A stretch of 33,585 bases of DNA from NCBI RefSeq assembly GCF_000315625.1, contig NW_005434598.1, forward strand, positions 177,052 through 210,636. Direction: 5' to 3'. Origin of the DNA: Guillardia theta CCMP2712. Its lineage: Eukaryota > Protista > Cryptophyta. Numbering within the stretch: position 1 is the first letter of the stretch; every line of letters starts with the position of its first letter. The position numbers and the translations under genes were made by a program. The notes beneath the pieces were generated by a model. It did not search any database, was not told the DNA's origin, and saw only the letters and a program-made list of their open reading frames with translations. Of this stretch, positions 12,106-18,885 are shown in pieces.

Positions 12106-12360
12106 TCCTCTCCTCCTCCTCCTCCTTCAGTCGCCCTTCCCTTTCCCCCTACCCCTCCTCCCTCCTCCCTCCTCCCTCCTCCCTCCTCCCGCCTCCCTTC
12201 TTCTCTCTCTACTCGTACGTCCCNNNNNNNNNNNNNNNNNNNNNNNNNNNNNNNNNNNNNNNNNNNNNNNNNNNNNNNNNNNNNNNNNNNNNNNNNNNNN
12301 NNNNNNNNNNNNNNNNNNNNNNNGGAGGGAGGGAGGGAGGGAGGGAGAGGGAGAGAGGGT

Positions 12361-14203
12361 TGTTCTTGTCGTTGGTGAGACTTGACAGAGTTGGCAGGAA
12401 GGAGGAAGGAGAAGTTCTTCTTGCCTGATTTCGGCTGCCAATCTCCTGCAGCAGCTCTTGGATGTGATCGTTTGTCATTCCCAGCTCCTGTCCAGCAGTC
12501 AAGCCAAGAGAAGGAACGAGGAGGAGGCAAGGGACAAGGGTCGGAAGGGATGGAAGAAGGGGAGGGAGAAGGAGGAGGGTAAAGCAGTTGCGGAGGAGGA
12601 AGCAGTGGTGGCAGTAGCTGAGGAGGAGGAGGAGGAGGAGGAGGAGGAGGAAGAGGAGGAGGAGGAGGAGGAGGAGGAGGAGGAGGAGGAGGAGGATACT
12701 TGCTCTGCTTCGTTGGCTTTCTCCTCATACTGAGAAGTTCAGAAACATCAGAAGAGAGAGAACAGTGGAGAGAAAGAAATCGAACTCACAGTCACACTCT
12801 GAGCAAGAGCTTCGAGCCTTCTCTGGAAGAAGATCATCGGCAAGAGACAAGAAGGAGAAAGTGAGTGAGTGAGTGAGTGAGTGAGTGAGTGAGTGAGTGA
12901 GTGATTGATTGATTGAGTGAGTGAGTGAGTGAGTGAGGAGAGGATGGAGGAGGCAGGCAAGGAGCAGGTGCTACACTAGATCAACAACAAACACGCGAAA
13001 GACGAGACAGATTCATCTCACACTTTGCTTTCTATCTCATCAATTGTCTTTCTTGTTGTCTTCACTCTCATCAATGTTCATCTCAAACCTGTTCGGAGTA
13101 GTTCAGGTCTCGCTCGAGCTTCAGATTCCTCTGCTTTAACTTGGCAAGCTTGTTTGGCATGAGAACCAACACAGAGATAGAAGAAATCGATACACCTCCT
13201 CATCCTTCTCTTTCATCTTTTGCTTTACTATATCGCTGTAAATGTTTATCAGCATTCGTCTTGTTGTTGCAACAAAATTTTGCAATAGAATTCGGACAAA
13301 ACAAAGAGCTACAACTCATCAGAGAACTAGCAATCACAGCAAACGCTCCTTATCGCAAACACACGTTTGACTCTACAAGAAGTCACCTGCAAACATTGGA
13401 GATGAAATTTTCTTCAGCTTGTCCATGGAGAAAGGAGATTATACTCTGCAAAATCGACAGATTGTTTGAGAAAAAGCATCATCATTCCACCAGCGTCTCA
13501 AATTTCTTACATCAACGTGTACTCCGCCGATCATATCTGAAAATAACATGAGAGGTTTGAAGGATGCCAACTGAAGCAATTACTTGCTAGCCAAAGGAAA
13601 AAGACGCCGATCTTTTCGAGCAGGAAACTTGCAACGGAGAAATTGCGGATCTGGTAACAACCATGAGATAAGATGGTAAGACGCTGAAGACTAGAAAAGC
13701 ACTGAGAGATGAACAAAAGCATAAAATCAATGCATTCTTCTTTGAACAATCAAAATTCTTTCTAAATTTTTCTTCCTTCTTCAATATTTTCTCCATTTCT
13801 CCATCCCTTGTCGTCTGTCTCCCCAACCTCCCCTCTTACACTTCTGTTCACCTTGATGCTTTTCCTCGCCTCCTTCTCAGCGACCTGAATCCCATGAAGT
13901 TCTGCTAGCTCTCTATGCATCTTGACATGCAGCTGTAAAGTGTCGCCATCACCCCCACCATCACCACAAGAAGACAACTACGTTGAAAGCTTCTGACGGG
14001 TCCGAACATTCAGACAGGAAAGGGATCGAACGAGGTAGTTTCCTTGACTGCTTCTTGTTCAGCCTCCGCCAAAACTTTACAGCACCGCTCACCGCCTCTG
14101 CAAAGAACTCCCGGTCCTTCTCGTCTGACTCGATTCCCCCGATCGCTCCCTGAGGCATTTAGTAAACAGATAGCTCCCTCATGCTCCTCCTCTGCTTCCT
14201 TCT

Positions 14204-14273
<70 letters not shown>

Positions 14274-16196
14274 TCTCTCCTGCTCTTTCTCTTCGTCCTC
14301 GTCCTCGACCATCCTTGCCCCAGTCCTCTTCGTTCTCCTTGCTCATATCCTGTTCCTCAAATTCCTCCTCCTCCCCCTCCCTTCCTNNNNNNNNNNNNNN
14401 NNNNNNNNNNNNNNNNNNNNNNNNNNNNNNNNNNNNNNNNNNNNNNNNNNNNNNNNNNNNNNNNNNNNNNNNNNNNNNNNNNNNNNTCTTCCTCCTCCTC
14501 CTCCTCCTCCTCCTCCTCCTCCTCCTCCTCCTCCTCCTCCTCTGACCTGCCAGCATTCAGCATGATGCGACGTAATGCTCAAACAAAGAGGTGTCCCTAC
14601 AACCAATTACAACGCATCATGATAATCTCAGACAAATGCTTTCAAACCAAGTTCAAATCTCCCGCTCTGCGTTAGAAAAATAACACGAGGAGGCTAAAAA
14701 AGATCATATCAAAAGTGAGCAAAATCTAACAACGTTGGACCTTCATTGGATAATCCCTGTCAAGTTGTATTCTGCCATGATATAACCCTCTTGCGAAAGG
14801 AGATTCTGCCAAACTCGTGAGAATTTACTCACATCCACCCTCCCTGCGCTTTCCTCCTCTCTTCCTCTCCTCCTTCTCTCCCCTCTTTCTCTCCTCCTCT
14901 CCTCTCTTTCTCTCCTCGTTCTCTCCTCTCCTCCTCGTCCTCGCTCCTTGTGCTCTTTAATCTCCTTTGCATCTCACCTGGCGCTCCAAGAAGAACAAAA
15001 TGCCAATCAAGAATATCATCTTCCATGGGCCTGAGAAAAATATCATTGTTTCCATCATCATCACATCGTTATTGTCATCCTCGTGTCATCATAATATCCA
15101 GCAGCAGCACCTGCACTGGTACCTGGACCTGGACCTGGACCTGGACCTGCACTCCATTCTCCTCCTCCTCCTCCTCCTCCTCCTCCTCCCCACCTACTGC
15201 TCGTCCTGCTCGTCCTACTCGTCATCTCTCCCTTCCAGTCCTGCTCCTTGCTCCTTGCTCCTCCTCTACATCGAGATCACAATGATCGCTTGTCTCACTT
15301 TGCACGGAAGAAATCAGGCGGGTCTTCTTGTAGCGCTGCAAGCTCGCTATGCACTCTTTTGATCGCAAGCGGACTCGGAGGACCTTGACTGCAACCAGGA
15401 CACGTCAGAGAAGACAAGAACACATCAAACAACATGTTCAGAGTCAACACCACGGGATAGAATGTCATAGAGTGTATATGAAGTACACAGTACGAGTTTG
15501 ATCGAAAGCGAAACATGAAGATAACAACATGCCAAGTTCACTTGATGAGTTTGAGTTCAAATGATGTTACAGCTCCTCTTGTCGCGTCGCACATCTCACC
15601 TGAACCCGTCATTCAGCTGGTCCAGACCTCCTCTAAGTCTCAGCGAGGAAGGTCTGTTCCTGTCCACTGATATCCTTCCACCGTATGCTAGCTCGACGCC
15701 CGAGATGCTGAGAGCAGCGAGAGGGAGTGAGGCAGAAGAGGAGAGGAGAGGAGAGGAGAGGAAAAAGAAGAAAGGGAGAAAGATGAGATGTGATGAGATG
15801 AGAGGAGAGGAGAGGAGAAAGAAGAAAGGGAGAAAGATGAGATGTGATGAGATGAGAGGAGAGGAACAAGAAGAAAGGGGAAAAGATGAGATGAGATGAG
15901 ATGAGAGGAGAGGAACAACCAGAAAAGGGAAAAGAGGAGAGGAGAGGGAAAAGAAGAAAGGGGAAAAGATGAGATGAGATGAGATGAGATGAGATGAGAT
16001 GAGAGGAGAGGAGAAGAACAACCAGAAAGGGGAAAAGAGGAGAGGAGAGGGAAAAGAAGAAAAGGGAAAAGAGGAGAGTAGTTCTCGTCAGAAAGATATT
16101 CGAATCTTGTCAATGAAAAATAAACCTCAAGGACCATATTTCCCCTGTACAACAGCAAAACATGACGACAAGGCTGAAGATCTTGACGGATTTCAT
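12361..16196 (-). CDS. Ubc6/UBE2J-family ubiquitin-conjugating enzyme with N-terminal leader and C-terminal hydrophobic plus coiled-coil extension; 3' end approximate
   Basis: Phase-consistent exons: MKSVKIFSLVVMFCCCTGEIWSL|SISG..SSLRLRGGLDQLNDGF|SQGPPSPLAIKRVHSELAALQEDPPDFFRA|KPMEDDILDWHFVLLGAP|ESPFARGLYHGRIQLDRDYPMK|PPRVIFLTQSGRFEL|GTPLCLSITSHHAECWQ (catalytic Cys)|gap|GAIGGIESDEKDREFFA...FFLWLA|NMIGGV...LKQRNLKLERDL|RRLEALAQ|YEEKANEAEQ|ELGMTNDHIQELL. Confidence 0.85.
12860..12936. repeat. (GAGT)n microsatellite, intronic
   Basis: GAGT run interrupted by GATT units. Confidence 0.9.
15721..16080. repeat. Composite purine-rich tandem repeat (GAGAG/GAGAT/GAAGAAAGGG units) in intron 1 of the E2 gene
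   Basis: Roughly 50-bp unit (...gaagaaagggagaaagatgagatgtgatgagatgagagg...) repeated with degeneration. Confidence 0.85.
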
Positions 16197-16757
16197 CTCT
16201 TTCTTGTTGTCTTCTCTCCAAGATTCACATTATCTCCATGTTCATCTTCACATCGTCGTCATAAACTATCCCTTGCCATCGCCCGTTTCCCACTGGTCTT
16301 CGAACACTGAAGTTCCTCCCCAATGTTCACACCACCACATGCACATTTCTTTATCTCTCTCCCTCCCCCCCCTCCTCTCTCTCTCTCTTCCTCACTCGGC
16401 CACTGTCACGCTCCCTCCCCTCCCTCCCCTCCCTCTTTCCCTTCTCCTCCCCTGCGGCCCCCACCTGCATTTTTCCCTGCCCGCTCCGGGAATTTGTTTT
16501 TCCGCTTTTTGGTAGGAACAGGAACACGGGGGAAGGGAAGAGAGGGGAGAGGAGCAAGAGGGAGGGAGAGAGGGAGAGCAAGGGGTGCATGTCAGGGGAA
16601 TGGAGGAGGCGATGGGAGAAGGGGACGAGAGTGGAGAGGGGAAGGGGTTGGGGACGGGAGAGGGGGAGAGGGGGGGGAAGGGGAGGGGAGGGGACGGGAA
16701 GGAGCAGAGATCTTGAGTCTTTATCAGGTTCAAACGATTATTCATGATGCATGCCGT

Positions 16758-18686
16758 TCAGTCAGCGACATAGCACGTAGAGGCACTTCGAACAATCTCC
16801 TCCGGTTCGCATGCACACATGCATATCCTGTAGATGAGGTCGAGGAGCGGGAAGCGACCAACAACCTGTTTGTCTCGTAGCATCTGCACACGGAAGGACA
16901 GCTCAACGCCGCTGCCCTTGTACAACCCTCCTCCTCTACCTTGTGCACATGCTCGATGGTCGACACTCCTTGTAGCTTCTGCCCTCCGAGCATGCTTGCT
17001 TCGAGCTGCTTCCAGTCTCGCGGTCCTCTCGCAAACTGTTCCGCGCACCTGGAAGGTGTCGTGAATGATTGGGATCTGCGCACGACACAATGATTACTTC
17101 CTGTTTCTCCCCCCGAAGCATGTCGTGATGAGGTCAGCAACGCCGCAAGATTCCAAGATAGTGTCTTTCTGACAGGTGTACCAAGGTTTTCAGAGATGTG
17201 GTAGAGAAGAAAGGAAGATGCTATTACCATCATCTCAGGGAAGAAAGTCTCCCCAAATCTCAACATCTCATGCATCCCAATGCGCATGATTGCCGCTTTT
17301 GTGTTTGTTCCATACCTGTTGTCACATGATTATGATGATGTTGACATGCACATCGGCGCACCCAAGTCCATCTACAAAACCTGCTCCCAGTGCTATGACA
17401 TTCTTCAGCGTTCCAAAAATCTCAACGCCCACAGGGTCAGGAATGAGCCTTAGCTGTAAATGTTTCAGAAACCAATACCAATACGCTGCTTGCAACAGTG
17501 ACATCGGAAGGACCTGAAAAGTCGGTTGCTCAAACAGCGTCTTGATGAGTTCCGCATTCCCCTTCGACCTGTATCCAATGGTTGCCTCACAGAAGTCTCC
17601 TGCATGTAACTTTAAGGCTCGTAAAGAACAATCTTACTCTTTGATCGCACCACGTGCAACCTCATCAGCAACGTTTGCTCCCATCAAGACAGAGATGTCA
17701 CATCCTTCCAGCCCATCTGAGATCTGACAACACGTTGAGTTCTTCACCCCTTTGTCTTCTCCGTACCTGCTGCGAGATTCGAACTAAATTGCCATCCTTG
17801 TCTGTTGGACGGTCAGTACAACACCGAGAAAAAACGGTGGAAGGAGAGGAAAATATTTGCGGCGAGTTGCGGAAAGAAAGGATACACGTGCATTACCTGT
17901 CGCCATTCCTTTGATCAACGATACTGCAATCGCGTTGGAGCTCCTTGCTTGTTGGATGGTGGGAAGAAGTCTGAACAATACGTCAGCAGGTCTAATCTTG
18001 ATCTGCAAGTTGTGCTGGTGACTTTGGAAGAAACTGGTGAGGGAGCGCGAAGACAAGGATCTGTGCATCAACATCAAATTTGCAAGCAGGTGTCGAGATC
18101 CATTTGACTGAGAACCCACAGTTGCTCCCGACGCTGCTTGTGCGAGATCTGGGACCGCGATCACATTGGATGGCAACTCGACACCTATTAGTAAACGATC
18201 ACGACACCACGGATTGACATTGCAAGAGCAAGACCTGGGAGGTATTTCACATTTTCATGCCGCGTATTTATGATCTCAGTAAGTTTCTGTCCGTCAACAA
18301 TCTCCTCGTACCTTTCTCGGCAAAATCATGCAACGAACCCCCGCCCTCAAAACTTACACCCACATCTTGACCGACCTGTCGAACCTGTCTCCAAGCCTCT
18401 CTGTGTTCTGCCCGATGATTCTTGCAACTGTACTGCCCCAGTTCCCAGACCCAACTACACACACACGCTCCACATCTGGTCTTTCGCCCACTCCACCCCT
18501 CAATCTTTCCCATCCATAAATCTGCCGCAACGTTCCCACATGCTCACGGATCAACCCACCAGCCAGCACTACCCGCCCTTGGACTGCAGCAACCTGAGAT
18601 AGGGGAAGATGGCCGGCATGAGAGCACACTTGAAGTAGCGACATGGCAAGCAGAGGTATTTGCAACCTTTGATGAGGAAGACGCAT
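16758..18686 (-). CDS. GPD1: NAD-dependent glycerol-3-phosphate dehydrogenase (eukaryotic GPD1 type) with N-terminal leader; alternative start 18881, possible extra last exon ending 16266
   Basis: [106 protein letters not shown]. Confidence 0.95.
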
Positions 18687-18885
18687 GGAGGATTGCCGAA
18701 AGAGGCGGCAGGCTGATCTGGATGCAACAGACGATGGAGACGATGCCGTTAGAGACGAGGATGATGATGATGATGAAGATGATGCCAATGATGATGATGA
18801 TGATGACGACGACGACGACGATGAGGGGCAGGATTGCGCGCCTGGCTGTCCCACAGCCATTTTGCTGGCCGTCTCAGGCATGATG

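Follow-up and report, generated by a model that had tools for sequence, protein, structure and literature searches.

The DNA analysed here, referred to below as the window, is a stretch of 33,585 nucleotides from the nuclear genome of the cryptophyte Guillardia theta CCMP2712 (contig C76:177052-210636), and it carries on its minus strand a spliced and expressed gene for a ubiquitin-conjugating enzyme (E2) with an N-terminal leader. On sequence criteria, the E2 core is of the UBE2J1/UBC32 type, that is, the J1 subtype of the Ubc6/UBE2J family. Guillardia theta keeps a nucleomorph and a periplastid compartment, the relic of the red-algal cytoplasm, and we infer with a probability of roughly 0.7 that the gene encodes a J1/Ubc6e-type E2 which has been re-addressed to this compartment. 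In the public assembly, the leader-bearing gene is without its 3′ end and without one exon of the core.

Expression and splicing were followed by aligning contigs of public transcript runs to positions 12324 to 16400. These contigs join about 20 exons, and the 15 splice joints listed all read CT..AC on the plus strand, which corresponds to GT..AG on the minus strand. Contigs of X1 and of X2, two runs from separate studies, share these joints, and a single X2 contig of 1565 nt covers the entire known message. All 18 assembled coding exons form a single open frame when joined and translated locally. The hydrophobic stretch and the coiled-coil exons that had been noted downstream of the core proved to be members of one spliced transcript with it. 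The 5′ untranslated region (5′-UTR) holds a GT-AG intron at about 16464-16246, and an upstream open reading frame (uORF) of eight codons (MQMNMEIM and a stop, with four in-frame ATGs) spans the resulting junction and ends 28 nt ahead of the main ATG. An older run, X12, continues straight through the introns and is therefore genomic, and no reads were placed on the gene stretch from the 6% of the raw-read RNA run X16 that was read.

The product of exon 1, MKSVKIFSLVVMFCCCTGEIWSL, begins with two Lys followed by an 11-residue hydrophobic core with a mean Kyte-Doolittle value of 2.81 by heuristic hydropathy. Because the positive charges are N-terminal to the hydrophobic core, translocation is predicted for the remainder of the chain. 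The coding part starts at ATG 16196, with an in-frame stop upstream. This exon (16126-16196), described as signal-peptide-like in the original prediction, occurs in spliced transcript contigs from two runs, each belonging to a different study. Its splicing to the E2 core had been proposed as a direct, in-phase junction; the phase arithmetic is correct, whereas the direct junction is not seen, and a 108-nt exon (15707-15600) sits between the two. The joints from exon 1 to exon 2 and from exon 2 to the core are found in both X1 and X2 contigs. The leader of the E2 is transcribed, and is longer and more organelle-like than first described.

The N-terminus runs from the signal peptide through SISGVELAYGGRISVDRNRPSS and LRLRGG to LDQLNDGFSQGPPSPLAIKRV... 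The LRLRGG box occupies residues 46 to 51 (window positions 15643-15626), at a distance of 22 residues from the signal-peptide exon and of 15 from the first core helix, and the spacer that separates it from the signal peptide contains six Ser, six Gly and five Arg. The signal peptide plus spacer of a bipartite targeting sequence are thus indicated by heuristic features together with splice joints. The leader adds about 60 residues relative to a leaderless paralogue in the same genome, which starts nine residues before the equivalent helix. By the -3/-1 rule, signal-peptide cleavage is possible after G18, S22, S24 or S26, placing E, L, I or G at +1. In plastids reached by bipartite signals, an aromatic residue or Leu at +1 lets cargo pass through the inner membranes (PMC4494062). 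As none of the possible +1 residues is aromatic, the leader fits periplastid rather than stromal targeting under this rule, with Leu being ambiguous (PMC4494062). The leader exons gave no match to Pfam and NCBIfam when compared exon by exon, and among proteins of 90 to 283 residues none was found by a word search that used the open frame surrounding the leader exon.

The LRLRGG box appears to define a class of leaders in this genome. In the 87.1-Mb, 669-contig assembly, a DNA pattern for L-R-L-R-G-G gave 353 matches, compared with 255 in a reversed control. Among the 100 matches listed, 73 encode a true LRLRGG where about 32% would be expected from the degenerate pattern (binomial 3e-17), and at least 13 of the first 20 true sites have a Met and a hydrophobic stretch some 20 to 45 residues upstream in the same open frame. 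The cargo sampled includes EF-1alpha (GTP_EFTU, 3e-11) and one methyltransferase. The window E2 has the layout of this class, in which a signal peptide and a spacer of 15 to 30 residues precede an LRLRGG just ahead of the mature domain, and it would be a clean case of it, the host copy having no leader and the presumed retargeted copy having one. Pfam searches in six frames detected one NPL4 locus (C8:745557-749536) and two UFD1 loci (C10 and C5); a search of 1.5 kb around these and around the UBE2W-type gene on C25 turned up no L.LRGG motif, though leader exons of these genes may be situated farther off. A literature search found no paper combining LRLRGG with periplastid targeting.

The original prediction of a Ubc6-type core with its catalytic Cys is borne out. 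The Cys codon (14583-14585, context LCLSITSHHAECW) is translated within SGRFELGTPLCLSITSHHAECWQ, and the core reads ...PMEDDILDWHFVLLGAPESPFARGLYHGRIQLDRDYPMKPPRVIFLTQSGRFELGTPLCLSITSHHAECWQ, then 21 residues, then GAIGGIESDEKDREFFAEA. The Cys stands in the CLS[IM]..H..E.W context and GRF takes the place of HPN, both of which are marks of the Ubc6/UBE2J family. A degenerate pattern for the catalytic exon of this family matched four loci genome-wide, namely the window gene and one gene each on C9, C4 and C17, and none in the control. In local tblastn comparisons with these three paralogue loci, the window exons are 53-58% identical to the J1 gene on C9 (E 1e-23), 46% to the J2-type gene on C4, and 29-48% to the gene on C17 in patchy separate pieces. 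Against the PDB, the catalytic exon of the C9 gene scores 1e-12 to 1e-8 with yeast Ubc6 and human UBE2J2, the other E2 families coming out at 0.17 or worse. Exon 5 of the window gene gives a weak UQ_con match in Pfam/NCBIfam (E 0.13), and its PDB matches, also weak, are to UBE2J2 only.

A profile built from the C9 and window exons, with each exon as a separate row, led to proteins named UBE2J1 or UBC32 in animals, plants, fungi and protists. Exon-wise identity of the window gene to J1 enzymes of cryptophytes, plants, animals and fungi is similar throughout, at 47-54%, and cryptophyte copies are not favoured. The window protein itself was not among the results of the profile search, which were of at most 345 residues, probably owing to this limit or to the ranking, and no red-algal sequence could be identified among its named matches, about 117 residues in six pieces being alignable. 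The 31-residue exon 3, compared with a large representative set, matched nothing.

A search for a second, leaderless paralogue was positive. The gene on C9 (C9:875119-878154) is 100% identical to GUITHDRAFT_157123, a hypothetical protein of Guillardia theta CCMP2712, and it starts with MSSQLNTNNPAIRR.../MSSQLNTNNPAIRRILSELKKL... without a leader; there is an in-frame stop upstream, and the NCBI model has the same start. A separate leaderless host copy, as looked for in the case of periplastid-targeted proteins, therefore exists, and the objection that the window gene might be the sole host-type Ubc6 does not apply. The catalytic exon of the C9 gene reads CLSISQHHPELW, whereas both C4 and C17 have CLSMSD.HPE.W, which is J2-like. 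In the orthologues from Hemiselmis, Baffinella and Rhodomonas, the C9 catalytic exon is conserved at 91-95%, and a relative with 95% identity has been named UBE2J1 by the Joint Genome Institute. No LRLRGG-type motif (L.LRGG) was found within 1.5 kb of the C9, C4 or C17 genes. The public model of GUITHDRAFT_157123 has 139 amino acids, ends in ...DYSDEERR and is without the linker and tail anchor of full-length J1 enzymes, so that it looks truncated. The loci C4:789850 and C17:210010 are two J2/Ubc6-type E2 genes, the first exons of which would need RNA data to be defined.

The 1565-nt contig is present on both sides of the assembly gap 14387-14486. Between its matches to 14047-13982 (contig positions 828-893) and 14805-14741 (1110-1174) lie 216 nt, of which exons 6, 7 and 9 (46 + 50 + 57 nt) take up 153, and the remaining 63 nt make 21 codons with phase 0 on entry and exit. 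The low-complexity sequence on either side of the gap has no RNA coverage, which places the 63-nt exon inside it. Exactly 21 residues (PGWDIRTALTAIQSFMPTPGN) separate ...ELWQ from GAIAAL... in the leaderless paralogue, and the window gene reads ...ECWQ before the gap and GAIGG... after it. Taken together, the span of the contig, the 63-nt arithmetic and the length in the paralogue show that the two sides of the gap belong to one gene, in frame, and that the assembly is without one conserved core exon.

The end of the gene at 12361, as given in the original prediction, could not be upheld, as this position is the edge of the gap 12224-12323 and the transcript continues, running at least 368 nt beyond exon 12487-12425. 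This last assembled exon ends at 12425 with a GC donor (…AATCAG/GCAAGA) instead of GT, and its acceptor exon is absent from the assembly; a letter search found the first 30 transcript letters after exon 19 neither in the window nor in the whole assembly. The missing 3′ exons presumably lie in the gap. The introns of the gene are packed with simple repeats (at 15710-16110, 12850-12950, 12600-12700 and 14150-14545), which are (CTCAT)n-like, (CACT)n, (TCC)n, (GAG)n and (GCAGGA)n. Both gaps are flanked by simple repeats, which are the probable cause of the gaps.

The core and linker are followed by the segment FSVASFLLEKIGVFFLWLANMIGGVHV, which is internal, has a Glu-Lys pair inside it and reaches a best 19-residue Kyte-Doolittle mean (KD19) of 1.72. 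Six canonical J1 enzymes have terminal anchors with values of 1.9-2.5 in their last 30 residues. At least 104 known residues come after the segment in the window protein, and 75 residues of this tail keep a single heptad register in which 67% of the a/d positions are hydrophobic as against 19% elsewhere; the stretch is 40% charged and has two Pro/Gly in total. On these features the tail is coiled-coil-like, and its exons gave no match to Pfam or NCBIfam when compared one by one. Within the part of the protein that is known, a strong C-terminal tail anchor is not apparent; at least the last 368 nt of the messenger RNA (mRNA) lie outside this part. It is speculative that a weak internal segment and a coiled coil would let the protein cross two translocons first and become membrane-bound or oligomeric afterwards.

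Features of the leader-bearing E2 gene (window positions; all on the minus strand)
Feature	Position	Strand	Product or remark
5′-UTR exon, 3′ end	16465..16483	-	Joins 16245/16247 over the GT-AG intron; 18 loose X2 letters match 16467-16483; read by eye
Exon 1	16126..16247	-	5′-UTR and coding sequence 16196-16126, MKSVKIFSLVVMFCCCTGEIWSL; ATG 16196; GT donor 16125; transcript joints
Exon 2	15600..15707	-	108 nt; ISGVELAYGGRISVDRNRPSSLRLRGGLDQLNDGF; leader spacer ending in LRLRGG (codons 15643-15626), then LDQLNDGF; joints 15707/16126 and 15388/15600 in X1 and X2
Exon 3	15299..15388	-	First helix of E2 core, QGPPSPLAIKRVHSELAALQEDPPDFFRA; transcripts and translation
Exon 4	14978..15030	-	PMEDDILDWHFVLLGAP; transcripts and translation
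Exon 5	14741..14805	-	SPFARGLYHGRIQLDRDYPMK; weak UQ_con match; PDB matches to UBE2J2 only
Exon 6	14648..14693	-	PPRVIFLTQSGRFEL; GRF replaces the HPN motif, a Ubc6-family trait
Exon 7	14547..14596	-	TPLCLSITSHHAECWQ; catalytic Cys codon 14583-14585; donor at 14546 inferred
Position of hidden exon 8	gap 14387..14486	-	63 nt/21 codons; equivalent of PGWDIRTALTAIQSFMPTPGN in the paralogue
Exon 9	14093..14149	-	GAIGGIESDEKDREFFAEA, J1-type segment after the core; acceptor inferred
Exon 10	13982..14047	-	Linker, SRKLPRSIPFLSECSDPSEAFN; transcripts and translation
Exon 11	13852..13932	-	LHVKMHRELAELHGIQVAEKEARKSIK; transcripts and translation
Exons 12 (13650-13584) and 13 (13536-13511)	13511..13650	-	Weak internal hydrophobic segment FSVASFLLEKIGVFFLWLANMIGGVHV, best KD19 1.72
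Exons 14-19 (13445-13387, 13235-13196, 13148-13089, 12822-12790, 12729-12700, 12487-12425)	12425..13445	-	Charged heptad-patterned tail
Assembly gap	12224..12323	-	Presumed site of missing 3′ exons

The adjoining upstream gene (16700-18690, minus strand) looks like an NAD-dependent glycerol-3-phosphate dehydrogenase (VVGSGNWG, read by eye). It has a hydrophobic leader with ERLRGG ten residues ahead of the Rossmann motif, and its product is a second candidate periplastid protein, encoded beside the E2.

Several points weigh against a periplastid address or against an active enzyme there. The hidden exon and the 3′ end are known by their length in the transcript and not by their letters, which leaves room for a terminal membrane anchor. 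The signal-peptide cleavage site is uncertain; with a cut after IWS, the +1 position would be occupied by Leu, and Leu there permits stromal import in diatoms. The spacer has four acidic residues (five across the segment from signal peptide to core), which is unusual for transit peptides, and the step from LRLRGG leaders to a periplastid address is taken from the cytosol-type nature of the cargo. The profile search, with its results of at most 345 residues, recovered no orthologue of the leader-bearing E2 from another cryptophyte. Next to the active site, HPE has become HAE, and catalytic activity is assumed. The gene also belongs to the Ubc6 ("Atg14") group and is not a member of the clade of E2s (s_Ubc) of the symbiont-specific machinery (SELMA) that resembles endoplasmic-reticulum-associated degradation (ERAD). 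The short uORF upstream of the main ATG calls for caution but is not counted against translation.

A signal peptide with a hydrophobic segment further on (KD19 1.72) is also the arrangement of type I membrane proteins, and the product could be a host protein of the endoplasmic reticulum (ER) or the secretory pathway, either of this type or luminal, with the E2 domain in the ER lumen, perhaps without conjugating work and without crossing the periplastid membrane. We consider this unlikely, since the segment is weaker than the canonical J1 anchors (1.9-2.5) and the approximately 37 residues between signal peptide and core end in an LRLRGG box that is common to cytosol-type cargo, for example EF-1alpha; to our knowledge, the ER lumen also has no ubiquitin-activating enzyme (E1), ubiquitin or ATP supply for an E2. 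An ordinary host ERAD E2 facing the cytosol, with the leader either untranslated or an artefact of annotation or assembly, is very improbable. Exons 1 and 2 are in frame with the core in contigs of two studies, an in-frame stop lies upstream of the ATG, and a canonical leaderless J1 gene is already present elsewhere. Between the start and the core, M12 is the sole in-frame Met and falls inside the signal peptide; translation from the Met that comes next (PMEDD) would cut the fold short. The uORF ahead of the ATG speaks for such an enzyme, as does the blindness of contigs to transcript starts and minor isoforms.

Several features speak for a decaying or inactive duplicate, that is, an E2-like pseudoenzyme with no conjugating role in whatever location: identity to other J1 enzymes is 47-58%, the branch is long, HAE replaces HPE by the active site, the usual tail anchor is not seen and one exon is without seen sequence. 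Such a duplicate is nevertheless quite unlikely in view of a frame that stays open over 18 of the 18 assembled coding exons, a hidden exon of exactly the expected length, the retention of Cys, the GRF motif and the flanking His, and an mRNA that was assembled in several runs. Onward import into the plastid proper, to the intermembrane space or the stroma, would bring the E2 to a place where we know of no ubiquitin system, and the leader is of a type common to cytosol-type proteins. A cut after IWS would let the transit-peptide-like part begin with Leu and so allow inner-membrane passage (PMC4494062), whereas the other allowed cuts give Glu, Ile or Gly at +1, and such a destination appears extremely improbable.

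If the E2 does work in the periplastid compartment, the signal peptide would bring the nascent chain across the outermost plastid (ER) membrane by way of Sec61, the transit-peptide-like spacer would mediate crossing of the periplastid membrane by SELMA, and the leader would be removed at or near LRLRGG. The mature E2 would then be charged by the periplastid E1 and would serve a membrane RING ligase in the compartment, either in preprotein import or in residual periplastid ERAD-like quality control. UBE2J1 and UBC32 enzymes are partners of the HRD1/DOA10 ligases in animals and plants, and by analogy the nucleomorph-encoded s_Hrd1 is the obvious candidate ligase and a plausible partner of the window E2. 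A more specific version is possible, if rather doubtful: a periplastid Ubc6-type arm dedicated to s_Hrd1, in which the tail anchor has been traded for the weak segment and coiled coil, and the leader is clipped by a ubiquitin-type protease at LRLRGG, acting as a mimic of the ubiquitin tail. If true, the E2 would form part of a ubiquitin-based system of import and quality control and at the same time be one of its clients.

All published SELMA E2s, including the experimentally supported Toxoplasma gene, fall in the UBC15-18/UBE2W-like "Atg7" group (PMC12412216). Of the original proposal of a SELMA E2, the leader-bearing Ubc6-type enzyme stands, and its identification as "the" SELMA E2 does not; since the published ones belong to another family, the window gene is an additional periplastid E2 candidate, and its role in SELMA itself is unproven. 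The s_Ubc of the cryptophyte, alveolate, stramenopile and haptophyte (CASH) algae and of apicomplexans (for example Toxoplasma TGME49_295990) resembles it: s_Ubc, too, is an E2 encoded in the nucleus and provided with a bipartite leader, and it presumably acts at the second membrane, on the periplastid face (PMC12412216, PMC3681736). The two differ in group ("Atg7" for s_Ubc, "Atg14" for the window gene), and the UBE2W-type gene of Guillardia theta is on C25. Closer in family is the stramenopile Ubc6-group clade "Atg14.1", predicted to be plastid-targeted (PMC12412216), along with the "sUbc6" listed for Phaeodactylum (table 2 of PMC6610115). These share with the window gene a Ubc6-family E2, a predicted plastid or periplastid leader and a red-plastid lineage (PMC12412216, PMC6610115), but "Atg14.1" has been reported in stramenopiles only, and the window gene is from a cryptophyte. 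Our literature search found no paper naming Guillardia together with Ubc6.

The tail-anchored ERAD E2s UBE2J1/Ubc6e of animals and UBC32 of plants have in common with the window protein GLYHGRI, YPMKPP, SGRFE, CLSI..HH.E.W and GAIGG after a 21-residue segment, at 47-54% exon-wise identity. They begin without a leader, in contrast to the signal-peptide leader of about 60 residues in the window gene, and the known part of the window protein has a weak internal segment and a coiled-coil-like tail of at least 100 residues with no C-terminal anchor seen, as well as HAE for HPE. With GUITHDRAFT_157123 it shares the genome, the E2 subfamily and 53-58% core-exon identity; the paralogue is leaderless and 91-95% conserved among cryptophytes, whereas the window gene is divergent. 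Nuclear SELMA genes of cryptophytes are often duplicated host ERAD genes, and s_Hrd1 occurs in cryptophyte nucleomorphs only, without a clear role, the SELMA ubiquitin ligase (E3) being termed "elusive" (PMC12412216). For the pairing of periplastid E3 and E2, the leader-bearing UBE2J1-type E2 offers a concrete candidate partner of s_Hrd1. The window gene is a new cryptophyte member of the leader-bearing ERAD-type factors, not a canonical SELMA E2, and it suggests that more of an ERAD-like pathway has been kept around the cryptophyte plastid than an import-only model of SELMA needs.

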